From the sequence record OP752703.1: a stretch of 64,000 nt of DNA. The stretch is one strand, 5' to 3'. The position numbers and the translations under genes were made by a program. The notes beneath the pieces were generated by a model that ran no database searches, had not been told where the DNA came from, and was given only the letters and a program-made list of their open reading frames with translations. This document shows, one piece after another, positions 17,007-41,826 of the stretch (the first letter of the stretch is position 1; each line of letters opens with the position of its first letter).

Positions 17007-17308
17007 TGAACCTTGCTGACCTTTCCCCCGGCTATCAAATGATCTATATCATTTCGTGCGTACTACTGTCTGCTCTGCATCTATTTCTGATGGAAAAGGC
17101 GCTGTATAAAATTTATCGTATCCTGTTCAACCGTCATACATTCAGCAATAAGGTAGAGAAGTTCGGGTTTTACCTGCACGGCATTCTAGCGTATGCTGGT
17201 GGTATGACTCTGGTTCTCTCACCGCTGCTATTCATTGACCTAAAGTATGGTCTAATGGGAACCGGTTTTATTCTATTGATTCGTCTACTACTAAAGGGTA
17301 AGCTATAA
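17006..17308 (+). CDS. membrane protein
   Basis: 3 TM segments, coupled. Confidence 0.7.
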   Translation: MNLADLSPGYQMIYIISCVLLSALHLFLMEKALYKIYRILFNRHTFSNKVEKFGFYLHGILAYAGGMTLVLSPLLFIDLKYGLMGTGFILLIRLLLKGKL

Positions 17309-18066
17309 TGAGTCGTGCTTCTGATGCAAAGTCTCTAGGTGATCGAATGAAGGAGTATGAAGATGCATACCGCATCAAGCTCTCCCGTCGAATGCCTGTA
17401 ATTATCCGTCTAGATGGTAAGGCGTTCCACACTTGGACTAAGGGCCTAGACCTACCGTTCGATGATACCTTTATGGGTATGATGGCGGCTACTACCAAGT
17501 TCCTAGTAGATAACATTCAGGGTGCTGTGTTCGCATACACTCAATCGGATGAAATCTCAATCCTCTTGCGCAACTACGATTCGCTGACCACCGATCCTTG
17601 GTACGACAACAATCTTCAAAAGATGGTGTCGGTTGCCGCCAGTCTAGGCACTGGCCGTTTTAACCAGTTGTGTAATGAATTCCTAGAAGACCCTAAGCTG
17701 GCCTTCTTTGATGCCCGCGCTTTCATTCTGCCCAAGGAAGAAGTAGTTAACTATTTCATCTGGCGTCAGCAGGATGCAACCCGCAACAGTATTCGTGCTG
17801 TAGCGCATCACTACCTTGGTCACAATGCTATCCTTGGAAAGAATAACAGTGAAGTGCAGGATATGTTGATGGGGCTGGACGTTCCCGTAAATTGGAACGA
17901 TTACCCTATTCACAAGAAGCGCGGATACTGCTATAATAGCCTTTCTAAGGAAATCGATCAGCACATTCCGATCTTCTCTGCAAGTCGAGATTATGTCGGT
18001 CTACACCTAGAAAAGCTAGAAGATGCATCGCTGGAAGAAGTCCAGCAACTTATGGGTGAAGAGTAA
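17308..18066 (+). CDS. thg1: tRNA(His) guanylyltransferase / Thg1-like 3'-5' polymerase
   Basis: RMKEYE, RLDGKAFHTWT, YTQSDEIS, FDAR, WRQQDATRNS motifs. Confidence 0.93.
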   Translation: MSRASDAKSLGDRMKEYEDAYRIKLSRRMPVIIRLDGKAFHTWTKGLDLPFDDTFMGMMAATTKFLVDNIQGAVFAYTQSDEISILLRNYDSLTTDPWYDNNLQKMVSVAASLGTGRFNQLCNEFLEDPKLAFFDARAFILPKEEVVNYFIWRQQDATRNSIRAVAHHYLGHNAILGKNNSEVQDMLMGLDVPVNWNDYPIHKKRGYCYNSLSKEIDQHIPIFSASRDYVGLHLEKLEDASLEEVQQLMGEE

Positions 18067-21991: not shown

Positions 21992-22015
21992 TATTGACCC
22001 AAGTGCAAAAAGATG

Positions 22016-22054
22016 AAAAAGGGGCTTGACGGCCCCTTTTTCTTTGCCTATAAT
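22016..22054 (+). terminator. terminator hairpin carrying the -35 of the rnlA promoter in its loop
   Basis: aaaaaggggc-ttgacg-gcccctttttc; TTGACG(22026)-17-TATAAT(22049). Confidence 0.8.
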
Positions 22055-22081
22055 TTGCCCATACCAAACAAGGACGCAAAC

Positions 22082-23224
22082 ATGTTCCAGCACCCGCACT
22101 ACTCATTCAACGCTGACACTCTGTATGACGAGCTAATGGCTCTGTGCGATGGCAGCGACGTGTTCTACTTCCAAGATCACACCTACAAGGGTGACACCTA
22201 CCGCATCTTCAACTACCGTCTGGCTTCCTATGGCGACTTCCTAAAGCCGTCTGCACTGGAATGCCGTGGTCATACTTTCCGTCTTGTCGAAGGCTACCGT
22301 CCGGTACTGGTGTCTCTGCCGATGGAAAAGTTCTTCAACCTAGGCGAGAACCCGTTCACCATGGACCTTGATCTGTCGAAGGTCATTCGTGTAGAGGACA
22401 AGCGTGACGGTTCGCTAATCTCGACTGTCCTAGGTTTCCCCTCTGACGGCCAGATTCACGTCAAGTCTAAGGGTTCGTTCACTTCGGATCAGGCTAAGGC
22501 TGCATTCAACATGCTGAACTATGGCGACGAGTATTGGGAATTCTCCAAGATTGTTGCGGCTGCTATTTCGTTCGGTTACACTGTGAACATGGAATACACT
22601 GCACCGTCTAACCAGATCGTGGTAGGATACTCCAAGCCTGCTCTAACTGTCCTGAACATCCGTGACAACGCGACCGGTGCTTACATCGATCCGATCAACT
22701 TTGGCTTCCCGGCTTACCATGTTGCTGATTATCAGGAACGTGAAGTCGATAAGACTTGGCTGGAAATGATCGACCTTGAAACCGGAAAGGAAGGTTACAT
22801 CCTTGTATTCGACAACGGCCTAAAGGCAAAGGTTAAGAATTCGTGGTACTGCAACCTGCACCTACAGAAGGAACAGGTAAGTCAGCCCCGCCGTCTGTTT
22901 GAGGCAGTGCTACATGAAACCTCTGACGACCTAAAGACTCTGTTCAAGGAAGACCCTCAGTCTATCCAGCGCATTGTTGATATGGAAGTCATGGTGAAGC
23001 GTGAGTACAACCGACTTGCAAAGCTTGTCCATACGTTCTACACTGAGAACCATGAACTAAGCCGAAAGGACTACGCAATCCTAGGCCAGCAGGTACTTGC
23101 TCCGCATGGTATCTTCTCCCTAGCGATGAACCTGTTCCTAGGTCAGCCGCATGGTCTAACGGACTGGATGATTAAGAACTATAAGAAGTTCATCAACGAC
23201 GAAGGTGTCACTGATGCTGAATAA
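22082..23224 (+). CDS. rnlA: RNA ligase 1 (T4 RnlA family)
   Basis: IFNYRLASY, ECRG, KFFNLGEN, EDKRDGSLIS (motif I), KSKGS, EYT..N.IV, EGY, K.K..WY. Confidence 0.9.
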   Translation: MFQHPHYSFNADTLYDELMALCDGSDVFYFQDHTYKGDTYRIFNYRLASYGDFLKPSALECRGHTFRLVEGYRPVLVSLPMEKFFNLGENPFTMDLDLSKVIRVEDKRDGSLISTVLGFPSDGQIHVKSKGSFTSDQAKAAFNMLNYGDEYWEFSKIVAAAISFGYTVNMEYTAPSNQIVVGYSKPALTVLNIRDNATGAYIDPINFGFPAYHVADYQEREVDKTWLEMIDLETGKEGYILVFDNGLKAKVKNSWYCNLHLQKEQVSQPRRLFEAVLHETSDDLKTLFKEDPQSIQRIVDMEVMVKREYNRLAKLVHTFYTENHELSRKDYAILGQQVLAPHGIFSLAMNLFLGQPHGLTDWMIKNYKKFINDEGVTDAE

Positions 23225-33536: not shown

Positions 33537-33616
33537 TGGACCGGGCGACAGGGGTCGAACCTGCATTTTCATCCATTACCTGAGTCAACGTTCGTAGCGT
33601 TGCTGGTTACACCCGG
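33537..33616 (-). tRNA. non-canonical tRNA-like RNA, D-arm absent, ACG anticodon-like loop
   Basis: 7-bp acceptor + CCA, T-arm TTCGACC, hairpin CAACG-CTACGAA-CGTTG. Confidence 0.6.
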
Positions 33617-40029: not shown

Positions 40030-40362
40030 TTACTCTTCTACTTCGCTACTGTCACGTGTATTAGTCTGGATGTGAATGTCTACATCCTTATCTACCGAAA
40101 GTATATTGGCTAACATGATAGCGGTGATAATCAGAACATCAAGCCATGATCCTGCTACAGCAGAAACAATGAGTGCGATAAGAAGTAGAGCCATCACTGC
40201 ATATAGAAAGCGGTTATTGCTAAAAGTATAATCAGATCGACTAACTACGTCAACACATAGAGTGTGGACCTTCTCACCATTAAGAGACAGATTATCCTCG
40301 GATACATCAATATCAATTTCAGTGGTGTCTTCTACGTAAAGCTTCTTTAATAGATTCTTCAT
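40030..40362 (-). CDS. membrane protein
   Basis: 2 TM segments. Confidence 0.65.
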   Translation of the reverse strand: MKNLLKKLYVEDTTEIDIDVSEDNLSLNGEKVHTLCVDVVSRSDYTFSNNRFLYAVMALLLIALIVSAVAGSWLDVLIITAIMLANILSVDKDVDIHIQTNTRDSSEVEE

Positions 40363-40382
40363 TTGGTTTTCCCTTAATTAGA

Positions 40383-40516
40383 AGCCTGTGACAGGACTCG
40401 AACCTGCGACCTTTCCTAACAACATCCAGCGATCAACCCGAATGTTAACAACGCGACGTGTACTTAGCCCGTGTTATAAAGTTTATGGAGCGCTCTCCCA
40501 ACTGAGCTACATAGGC
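40383..40516 (-). ncRNA. tRNA-like RNA with ~60-nt expansion of the anticodon domain
   Basis: Intact acceptor, D-arm GCTC-AGTTGGGA-GAGC and T-arm GCAGG-TTCGAGT-CCTGT; no encoded CCA. Confidence 0.7.
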
Positions 40517-40621
40517 ATGAATTTTGTTGAGGGGACATTCCTCAGCCAGAGAATTCGGTCACTGACTGTATCTTCACGTCCTTTATTGGTTATCCAGATT
40601 TAACTGACCTCCCCGAATAAT

Positions 40622-40695
40622 TGTATGACGGAAGGAATCGAACCTTCACCCTCAGCGCTAACTGAGTTTACCAGAAGCCTTTCAGCCTATCATAC
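40622..40695 (-). ncRNA. degenerate tRNA-like RNA (6-nt anticodon loop)
   Basis: 7-bp acceptor, T-arm TTCGATT, CTCAG-TTAGCG-CTGAG; poor D-arm; no CCA. Confidence 0.55.
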
Positions 40696-40703
40696 CACGT
40701 GTT

Positions 40704-40779
40704 TGGTGCCGGTTGAGGGATTCGAACCCCCGACCTACTGCTTACAAGGCAGTTGCTCTACCAACTGAGCTAAACCGGC
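40704..40779 (-). tRNA. tRNA-Thr(TGT)
   Basis: Loop CT-TGT-AA, CCA. Confidence 0.95.
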
Positions 40780-40785
40780 GAAACT

Positions 40786-41028
40786 TTACTTAACGAATTC
40801 GATGATGAACGCTTCGTCACCACCAACAACACCTATTTTATCATCACTGAACACATTGTCAACTCTATCGATATTGAAAATGGTCAACTTGTTGAAATGA
40901 TAGGCTTCAATACTGAGAATGCCATCTTCATCGAAATATGCGCGATCTACCTTATAGACTGCATCAATATAGATTACAGTCCCATCCTCGACGCGATCAA
41001 TCTTTCGCAGTAGACTATTAAGCTCCAT
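40786..41028 (-). CDS. hypothetical protein
   Basis: 80 aa acidic beta-rich. Confidence 0.65.
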   Translation of the reverse strand: MELNSLLRKIDRVEDGTVIYIDAVYKVDRAYFDEDGILSIEAYHFNKLTIFNIDRVDNVFSDDKIGVVGGDEAFIIEFVK

Positions 41029-41733: not shown

Positions 41734-41752
41734 ATAATGTGAATGACCTGAG

Positions 41753-41826
41753 TCAGGACGGCTGGATTCGAACCAGCGGCTTCTTCCGTCCAAGGGAAGC
41801 ACTCTACCAGACTGAGCTACACCCTG
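41753..41826 (-). tRNA. second tRNA-Pro(TGG), no encoded CCA, inside a 14-bp inverted repeat
   Basis: Loop CT-TGG-AC; flanks tgacctgagtcagg / cctgactcaggtca. Confidence 0.8.

Follow-up and report, generated by a model that had tools for sequence, protein, structure and literature searches.

We analyzed a stretch of 64,000 nucleotides (nt) from sequence record OP752703.1 (hereafter the window), which is the final 64 kb of the record of Stenotrophomonas jumbo phage RAS14, and examined a 134-nt transfer RNA (tRNA)-like element located at 40383-40516 on the minus strand. The feature is real, and its sequence suggests that it is most likely a disrupted, non-decoding tRNA copy and not a spliced tRNA. 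The explanation we favour, to which we assign a probability of roughly 0.55, is that of a disrupted tRNA-Thr-like paralogue that does not decode and is processed as an RNA cutting site. The element would have arisen as a second tRNA-Thr-like copy in a phage operon of tRNAs and small open reading frames (ORFs), in which the anticodon stem-loop was replaced by approximately 70 nt of unrelated, unconstrained sequence, probably during homing-endonuclease-driven reshuffling of the locus. From the sequence we infer three things: the element is co-transcribed with the neighbouring genes, it is released as a tRNA-shaped RNA of approximately 134 nt, and its cargo has no function. The processing site would act as 'punctuation' that separates the upstream tRNA-like RNAs from the message of ORF110, by selection or by accident, and the excised RNA itself would be a by-product or a relic. 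The consequence is mostly one of correct annotation, in that the element should not be counted as a tRNA or an intron-bearing tRNA of the phage. It also provides a clean natural case of a tRNA body that lacks its anticodon arm and keeps every processing signal, and thus a test case for two questions, namely whether tRNA-shaped elements serve phage tRNA operons solely as RNA cutting marks and whether such frames can carry cargo.

A tRNA frame lacking a canonical anticodon arm

An Infernal search with the Rfam tRNA model (RF00005) matched the element with 39.0 bits (gathering threshold 29) over the full model (positions 1-71), with a 70-nt insertion in the anticodon region; the E-value was 1e-4 when computed for the 64-kb window and 8e-7 when computed for 500 nt. 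This search had been proposed in a preliminary description of the DNA, and the match confirms the tRNA body reported there for the same interval (D-arm, variable loop AGGTC, T-arm and acceptor) and places it on the minus strand. The depositors of the RAS14 GenBank record labelled the interval (296018-296151 of that record) 'tRNA-OTHER', and standard ARAGORN did not call it. With RNA position p corresponding to window coordinate 40517 - p, the acceptor stem consists of a 5' strand GCCUAUG (positions 1-7; 40510-40516), preceded by U at position -1, and a 3' strand CACAGGC that together with the discriminator U occupies 40383-40390. Six of the seven acceptor pairs form with 40384-40390, and the remaining one is an A5.C68 mismatch. 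U8 and A9 lead into the D-arm GCUC-AGUUGGGA-GAGC (positions 10-25; 40492-40507), seen in both the Infernal alignment and the sequence and containing G18 and G19, and G26 follows it. The variable loop AGGUC (40408-40412) supplies G46 and C48 and adjoins the T-arm GCAGG-UUCGAGU-CCUGU (40391-40407). The class-I tertiary core is complete, comprising U8, A14, G15, G18, G19, A21, G26, G46, C48, G53, U54, U55, C56, A58 and C61.

The anticodon region is the part of the tRNA that is missing. The Infernal alignment identified remnants of the 5' strand (CUCC, positions 27-30; 40487-40490) and of the 3' strand (GGAA, tRNA positions 40-43; 40413-40416) of the anticodon stem, which form only three pairs (UCC/GGA) flanked by C.A and A.A mismatches. 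The enclosing stem of the preliminary description was thus present but short, and the enclosed segment (40417-40486) measured 70 nt in the alignment and not 68 nt as initially given. The anticodon arm expected of a tRNA, a stem of 5 bp closing a 7-nt loop that carries U33 and a purine at position 37, was not found. The remaining identity features are C3-G70 (not G3:U70), no G at position -1, no long variable arm and U73. The element is predicted to be unable to decode, because it has no anticodon loop, none can be restored (see below), and it carries no anticodon-independent synthetase identity elements.

The frame was closest to tRNA-Thr. Both halves showed 92% identity to tRNA-Thr(TGT) of Salmonella phage SSBI34, and many to most of the matches to the 5' half were phage tRNA-Thr genes. 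A functional tRNA-Thr(UGU) of the phage itself (40704-40779, minus strand, identified by ARAGORN and Rfam) lies 190 nt upstream, and is replaced by two unrelated alleles in relatives. Compared with a canonical tRNA-Thr (RF00005), the element shares the acceptor stem, D-arm, 5-nt variable loop, T-arm, tertiary core and location in a same-strand cluster, and differs by its missing anticodon stem-loop, the absence of an encoded CCA and the lack of a restorable anticodon. The lack of CCA had been noted previously and was confirmed, with UCUAAUU following the discriminator; by comparison, CCA is encoded by 27 of the 29 tRNAs that ARAGORN called in the window. Phage tRNAs without an encoded CCA require 3' trimming and addition of CCA, as established for T4 tRNAs, and an acceptor/T-arm minihelix alone is normally sufficient for RNase P. 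The features for RNase P, for RNase Z/BN-type 3' trimming of CCA-less precursors and for the CCA-adding enzyme all appear to be kept. We would expect the element to be a substrate for all three activities, because the acceptor/T-arm helix and the D/T elbow are intact and the cloverleaf carries no energy cost (-35.4 kcal/mol for the constrained cloverleaf versus -34.5 kcal/mol for the minimum free energy (MFE) fold). The unconstrained MFE fold itself contains no cloverleaf, with the D-arm paired elsewhere.

Structure, variation and origin of the insert

The insert contains a hairpin at 40421-40446 (minus strand) in which AACAUUCGG pairs with CUGGAUGUU around an 8-nt loop, GUUGAUCG. The AACAUUC/GGAUGUU hairpin noted earlier is therefore present and longer than described, extending to nine pairs (40446-40438 with 40429-40421). 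It is flanked by a direct repeat of GUUGUUA (40447-40453 and 40417-40423), the second copy of which overlaps the 3' strand of the stem by 3 nt. The preliminary description had also called the insertion structured, a view that comparison with shuffled sequences did not uphold: the folding z-score was +0.56 for the whole element and -0.26 for the insert alone, and 77/200 shuffled inserts folded at least as well. Constrained folds of four natural haplotypes were mutually discordant. BLAST of the insert and the adjacent spacer against the window revealed neither a further copy nor any complementary stretch exceeding 11 nt, and Rfam searches over 40300-40800 at E <= 1 gave only tRNA-clan matches and one chance match, with no self-cleaving ribozyme, riboswitch, intron, transfer-messenger RNA (tmRNA) or Y RNA. 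No endonuclease gene or recognisable remnant of one was found within the element. We also considered mimicry of a CRISPR repeat on the basis of a likeness of GUCGCG...UGGAU to type I-C repeats, and dropped it due to unsuitable spacing and hairpin.

To follow variation at the locus, we pooled 13 related sequences, namely contigs from four sequencing runs (approximately 95-99% identity at the locus) and nine loci (L182-L190) fetched via ORF110. Variable sites numbered 6/79 in the insert and 10/106 in the adjacent 106-nt spacer (40517-40622, minus strand), which served as a neutral yardstick; the corresponding counts were about 13-16/333 for ORF110, 2/55 for the frame, 0/76 for tRNA-Trp and 1/73 for a neighbouring tRNA-like element at 40623-40695, the last two together amounting to 1/149. 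On these counts the insert appears to drift like the spacer, with tRNA-Trp and the neighbouring tRNA-like element held constant. The polymorphic insert positions were 40485 (an indel), 40454 (G>A on the RNA strand, C>T on the plus strand), 40442, 40440, 40428 and 40426. The last four are linked changes within the hairpin that keep three pairs and break one, and the variant hairpin (-7.7 versus -11.0 kcal/mol) was no more stable than 27% of random four-substitution sets, so that conservation of the hairpin under these substitutions was not significant. The D-arm and T-arm of the element were invariant in all 13 sequences. Most relatives carry CAUGGGC as the acceptor 3' strand (40387 T>C, 40388 G>A), which converts A5.C68 to A5-U68 and U4-A69 to U4.G69 and brings the stem from 6/7 pairs in the window to 7/7 if G.U is counted.

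Several points weigh against the explanation we favour. The frame contains 2 variable sites in 55 nt where approximately 4-5 would be expected under neutrality, a difference that is not significant. Constraint on the frame is not demonstrable, because the relatives diverge by only about 1-3%, and the frame is statistically inseparable from either the spacer group or the tRNA group; at this divergence, a selected punctuation role and a recent relic cannot be told apart by sequence comparison. An intron, or a cargo that evolves fast, would likewise be expected to show neutral-like drift of the insert. In the acceptor 3' strand, the CA/TG change keeps one non-Watson-Crick pair either way, and hints at some selection on the stem.

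The distribution of the element was narrow. Among GenBank phages it was present only in CM1 and RAS14, two Stenotrophomonas jumbo phages of about 319 kb each to which the region is 100% identical. Searches of IMG/VR with both frame halves and the ORF110 protein revealed no homologue, the frame pattern gave a single and unrelated match in JGI metagenomes (L060), and the protein database contained just one 97%-identity cluster of ORF110. Our literature search turned up neither a paper on CM1 or RAS14 nor a mechanism that would account for short inserts in phage tRNAs. Among GenBank entries, Xanthomonas phage Xoo-sp13 is the closest relative (its Rnl1-like ligase is 54% identical), and the order of its tRNA genes (Ser, Lys, Lys, Tyr, CUA ... 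Pro, Thr, Trp, Gln ... Arg) largely agrees with that of the window. Its Thr and Trp genes, however, are separated by two unrelated ORFs, and nothing corresponding to the element, to the second tRNA-like element or to ORF110 is present there. The element appears to be young and lineage-restricted, because Xoo-sp13 has no counterpart and the IMG/VR searches yielded no deeper relative. One of the nine loci, L184, comes from a 3.34-Mb record labelled Bdellovibrio bacteriovorus (CP102930.1), in which a phage block running from ORF99 through the element and onward adjoins bacterial ABC-transporter and response-regulator genes; it reflects chimeric assembly or, alternatively, inserted phage DNA.

The surroundings of the element are mosaic and rich in endonuclease genes. 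In the tRNA cluster (approximately 30-55.5 kb), ARAGORN predicts 29 tRNAs, every one on the minus strand, with small ORFs and a GOLLD RNA scattered among them; the cluster covers all 20 amino acids plus UUA and CUA suppressors, and contains at least four non-canonical tRNA-like genes. A promoter-like site, TTGACA-16-TAAAAT, lies upstream of tRNA-Thr (40835-40862, minus strand) and was recognised by consensus match only (11/12), and no terminator-like site was found on the minus strand down to 39900. Downstream of the element is ORF110 (40030-40362, minus strand), which encodes a small protein with a long hydrophobic stretch and no Pfam match; its ATG is located 20 nt from the 3' end of the element, after AAGGGAAAA, and several other ORFs of the cluster likewise begin about 20 nt after a tRNA. 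ORF110 accompanies the element in all nine loci, and in no strain is the block that these two form with the second tRNA-like element and the spacer broken up. The slot upstream of this block is occupied by one of three unrelated tRNA-Thr(UGU) alleles depending on the strain: the allele of the window, an 87-nt allele with a long extra arm in L185 (119-205), and a third in L190 (313-387) that is followed by a putative HNH gene (427-837; Pfam HNH matches below curated cut-offs). This pattern suggests allele replacement and not point divergence. Elsewhere in the cluster, an HNH/NUMOD4 homing endonuclease gene (46952-47560, minus strand) lies between tRNA-Gly(UCC) and a degenerate, CCA-less Gly-like copy. 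These two neighbours are at 46876-46951 and 47518-47590, both on the minus strand, and the start of the ORF overlaps the degenerate copy, labelled 'tRNA-OTHER' in GenBank. Endonuclease-driven reshuffling that leaves damaged tRNA copies behind seems to be visible in this cluster, because an HNH gene adjoins a degenerate copy and the Thr alleles are mosaic. Degenerate tRNA copies also adjoin homing endonuclease genes in other phage tRNA clusters, for example in the T4 segB region. The likeness to that case lies in the HNH gene beside a CCA-less copy and in the putative HNH gene beside the block in L190; the difference is that the element itself contains no endonuclease gene or recognisable remnant.

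Splicing and other explanations

The preliminary description had put forward a tRNA with a protein-spliced intron and pointed to two RNA ligases of the phage. Under this reading, an endonuclease would excise the insert and a phage RNA ligase, either the Rnl1-like enzyme with kinase/phosphatase or a second ligase, would join the halves into a working tRNA. The two ligases are indeed encoded in the window: a T4 Rnl1-like ligase with a C-terminal domain (22013-23224, plus strand) and a second RNA ligase (PF09414; 60251-61351, minus strand), as is a Thg1-like 3'-5' polymerase (17308-18066, plus strand); the three amount to a tool kit for the repair and maturation of tRNAs. We removed every possible single block from the four natural haplotypes, permitting variable loops of 4 or 5 nt, and searched for a 17-nt anticodon arm with at least four stem pairs, U33 and a purine at position 37. 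A canonical arm was restored in 0/4 haplotypes; 280 of 2000 shuffled inserts (14%) permitted such an excision. Relaxed bulge-helix-bulge (BHB)-like motifs were present in the element and also in 393/500 shuffles (79%), with none in the element at a junction yielding a tRNA. The polymorphic 1-nt U indel at 40485 directly follows CUCCA, at what would be position 32. In all 13 related sequences the element was unspliced, and apparent joints at 40411/40412 had 16-20 foreign letters between the two sides and derived from ordinary tRNAs of other organisms; the four runs are represented by assembled contigs of flat depth that are silent on expression, and the unspliced contigs are thus weak evidence on splicing. 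A Pfam scan restricted to the larger ORFs of the window identified no EndA-type splicing endonuclease, and a tRNA-Thr(UGU) is already available 190 nt upstream. The 3' end of the insert, GUUGUUA, contains the Thr anticodon UGU preceded by U, although this stretch does not line up with the three stem pairs and places a U at position 37 in lieu of a purine. It may be a remnant of the original anticodon loop, or chance, because the same 7-mer is repeated 24 nt upstream. ARAGORN run with introns permitted proposed a tRNA-Pro(cgg) that contains a 44-nt 'intron', has mismatched stems and includes a long variable arm, a model we rejected as poor. The element is also too short for a group I intron, as noted previously: the ribozyme core of such introns (P3-P9) usually exceeds 200 nt, and the 70-nt insert had no Rfam intron match at E <= 1.

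Short introns in huge-phage tRNAs provide a precedent for splicing. Tens-of-nt inserts in the anticodon region of tRNA genes, including tRNA-Thr(TGT), occur in Lak megaphages (example L043), where Devoto et al. described 'enigmatic' short introns that are not group I (bioRxiv 10.1101/356790). The Lak inserts are highly conserved, a canonical loop re-forms once they are removed, and there are alleles that lack the intron (bioRxiv 10.1101/356790); the element has no restorable loop and no insert-free allele that we could find, and its insert drifts. Archaeal and eukaryotic BHB introns are similar in size range and location in the anticodon arm, and archaeal examples recovered by our own pattern search lie at 37/38 and restore perfect arms, whereas the element has no BHB motif above chance, no canonical exon junction and no identified splicing endonuclease. 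Despite the two RNA ligases and the Thg1-like enzyme, protein-mediated splicing is the least supported of the serious options, and from the sequence we regard it as very improbable.

Another explanation, which we consider rather unlikely, is that of a functional tRNA-scaffolded RNA, in which the frame would provide RNase P/Z processing, CCA addition and stability and the approximately 70-nt cargo would be the active part (a decoy, a sponge or an antisense RNA, for instance), which may also hold for the T4 species 1/2 RNAs. In its favour, the frame is intact and lacks none of the tertiary-core nucleotides, the block that contains it is intact in all strains, many other phage and metagenome-assembled genome (MAG) contigs hold tRNA frames with 40-80-nt inserts, one pair of such sequences (L051/L056) shows two compensatory acceptor-stem changes, and the phage encodes genes of tRNA biology (Thg1-like, Rnl1-like and the second RNA ligase). 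The natural mascRNA, a tRNA-like RNA processed by RNase P/Z, and the engineered 'tRNA scaffold' for RNA expression, reportedly introduced by Ponchon and Dardel in 2007, follow the same principle of a tRNA body with its anticodon arm exchanged for cargo that the tRNA machinery nevertheless processes and stabilises. Their products are demonstrated, whereas processing of the element is predicted and its cargo bears no sign of selection. A resemblance to the T4 species 1/2 RNAs had also been suggested in the preliminary description, and in part it holds. The T4 genes rnaC and rnaD (119-139 nt) specify stable RNAs inside a phage tRNA cluster; rnaC (139 nt) ends in a T-arm and an acceptor-like stem, and rnaD in GCACCA. 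The intact frame, tRNA-like ends and operon position of the element fit this comparison; the cargo, however, is spacer-like and absent from the nearest relative. There is no sequence similarity to either T4 gene, and the element has a full frame whereas rnaC lacks both a D-arm and a complete cloverleaf (its highest score with an Rfam tRNA-type model was 17.5 bits). A functional tRNA-scaffolded RNA like T4 species 1 is possible, but a function for the cargo appears unlikely, because it evolves like spacer and is absent from Xoo-sp13; the insert drift, the indel polymorphism and the lack of unusual structure disfavour it, as do the missing second copy or long complementarity in the window and the lack of any homologue in IMG/VR or JGI metagenomes or any Rfam family match. 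The broader proposal of a widespread and undescribed phage RNA class, with the tRNA body as a natural expression and stability scaffold for fast-evolving cargo in the anticodon arm, is more doubtful still. Were it true, the drift would reflect an arms race, for example of decoys or sponges against host defences that target tRNAs, and the T4 species 1/2 RNAs would represent long-standing cases of such scaffolding; such arms-race cargo is possible in spite of the arguments just given.

A further alternative is that the locus is silent dead DNA, a pseudogene yielding no discrete RNA that is degraded with the spacer or misfolds and is ignored by RNase P. An MFE fold without a cloverleaf, the A5.C68 mismatch in the window strain, the lack of an encoded CCA and the neutral-like variation would all agree with this. 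However, the minihelix requirement of RNase P, the cost-free cloverleaf and the A5-U68 pair restored in relatives argue otherwise, and we judge this outcome distinctly unlikely. A miniature tmRNA-like or Y-RNA-like (YrlA) molecule is extremely improbable. The insert does contain a short reading frame (GCU AAG UAC ACG UCG CGU UGU UAA) with a single polymorphism, the synonymous UCG>UCA; a permuted tmRNA is found in the relative Xoo-sp13; and tRNA-like matches of Y-RNA type occur in other contigs. The hallmarks of tmRNA are G3:U70, a D-loop without a stem and a tag reading frame with pseudoknots, and YrlA and other bacterial Y RNAs carry a permuted tRNA-like module on a Ro-binding stem; the element has C3-G70, a normal D-stem and a topology that is not permuted. 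The tmRNA mode of ARAGORN (-m) returned nothing, and there was no Rfam match to tmRNA or YrlA (RF02553/RF01053) at E <= 1.

Other tRNA-like elements in the cluster and in other contigs

The surrounding cluster, with its non-canonical tRNA-like genes and strain-swapped tRNA-Thr alleles, is of more interest than the element itself. Directly after tRNA-Thr is the second tRNA-like element (40623-40695, minus strand), which has no CCA and matched a tRNA-Sec model with 23 bits, below threshold. It has a perfect acceptor stem and T-arm, a reduced D-arm with an AGGC loop, and a CUCAG/CUGAG stem closing a 6-nt loop, UUAGCG, and with one variable site in 73 nt among the 13 relatives it looks constrained; it belongs to the same mobile block as the element. 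Between tRNA-Ile and tRNA-Ala we identified an unannotated 80-nt tRNA-like gene (33537-33616, minus strand) with the acceptor CCGGGUG/CGCCCGG, a perfect T-arm, an encoded CCA and an anticodon-type hairpin CAACG-CUACGAA-CGUUG (ACG, Arg), but no D-arm and a variable region of roughly 21 nt. Its counterpart in Xoo-sp13 (L058 34929-35002) shows 93% identity over 74 nt, compared with 81% for tRNA-Thr, and a compensatory change in the first acceptor pair; the gene may be a D-armless tRNA-Arg. A third unannotated element composed of an acceptor and T-arm with a non-standard body (UGCACAG...GGAGG-UUCGAAU-CCUCU-A-CUGUGCA) is located at 48959-49027 on the minus strand.

Unusual features were also seen among the predicted tRNAs, all on the minus strand. 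Two are of suppressor type, a UUA tRNA (46793-46867) with an odd T-loop, GGAGCAUAACC, and a CUA tRNA (50693-50768) with an anticodon stem of three pairs; a CUA suppressor is also present in Xoo-sp13, and no UCA suppressor was seen in the window. These tRNAs may serve stop-codon read-through or recoding. The tRNA at 49598-49674 lacks U33 and is called Leu-CAA by ARAGORN and Cys in GenBank, and a second copy of Pro(UGG) at 41752-41826 has no CCA. The GOLLD RNA is located inside the cluster at 45528-45953 (minus strand, 217.8 bits). In roughly the same part of its cluster, Xoo-sp13 has the permuted tmRNA (RF04321, 65.7 bits; L058 24031-24374), between the CUA suppressor and Gly(UCC).

Related oddities were found in other contigs. 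Xanthomonas phage XbC2 (L002, approximately 401-460) and Erwinia phage Kaldavass (L003) carry an unannotated, circularly permuted tRNA-like module with D- and T-arms identical to those of the element. Its order is variable loop, T-arm, a 14-nt palindrome CAGUACUAGUACUG that forms a closed acceptor hairpin, D-arm and anticodon-stem strand. The two strands of a 9-bp closing helix, UGGAAUUUA/UAAAUUCCA, lie on either side of the module, and its topology resembles that of YrlA/Y RNA. In our pattern searches, tRNA frames with gaps of 40-90 nt separating the D-arm from the T-arm proved common, and frames with 40-80-nt inserts were common among phage and gut-MAG contigs. The frames recovered comprised archaeal 37/38 introns, Y-RNA-like forms, a few frames without a canonical arm, and a large gut-MAG and phage set in which the anticodon arm is intact and approximately 45 nt are inserted near positions 28/29; the element shares sequence with none of them.

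Inserts of approximately 40-55 nt near 28/29 in frames with perfect acceptor stems and undamaged anticodon arms were present in L065, L078-L080, L095, L098, L099, L105, L106, L109, L119, L126, L129, L130, L137, L143, L146, L150, L156, L168 and L173, and also in L038 and L060. These fall into at least three recurrent types: a hairpin followed by ACAGCAA; ...AUUACC-hairpin-GGUCAA...CUUACUUC; and a GC-rich type that in L143 adjoins a sub-threshold match to the Deinococcus Y RNA (53.5 bits). No Rfam family covers the first two types. A further, near-identical family of about 45 IMG/VR loci (within L004-L055) shows no evident canonical anticodon loop; it has the acceptor ACCCAAG/CUUGGGU, an encoded CCA, an extra arm and an AGACC/GGUCU stem that encloses approximately 30 nt including a poly-A tract of variable length.

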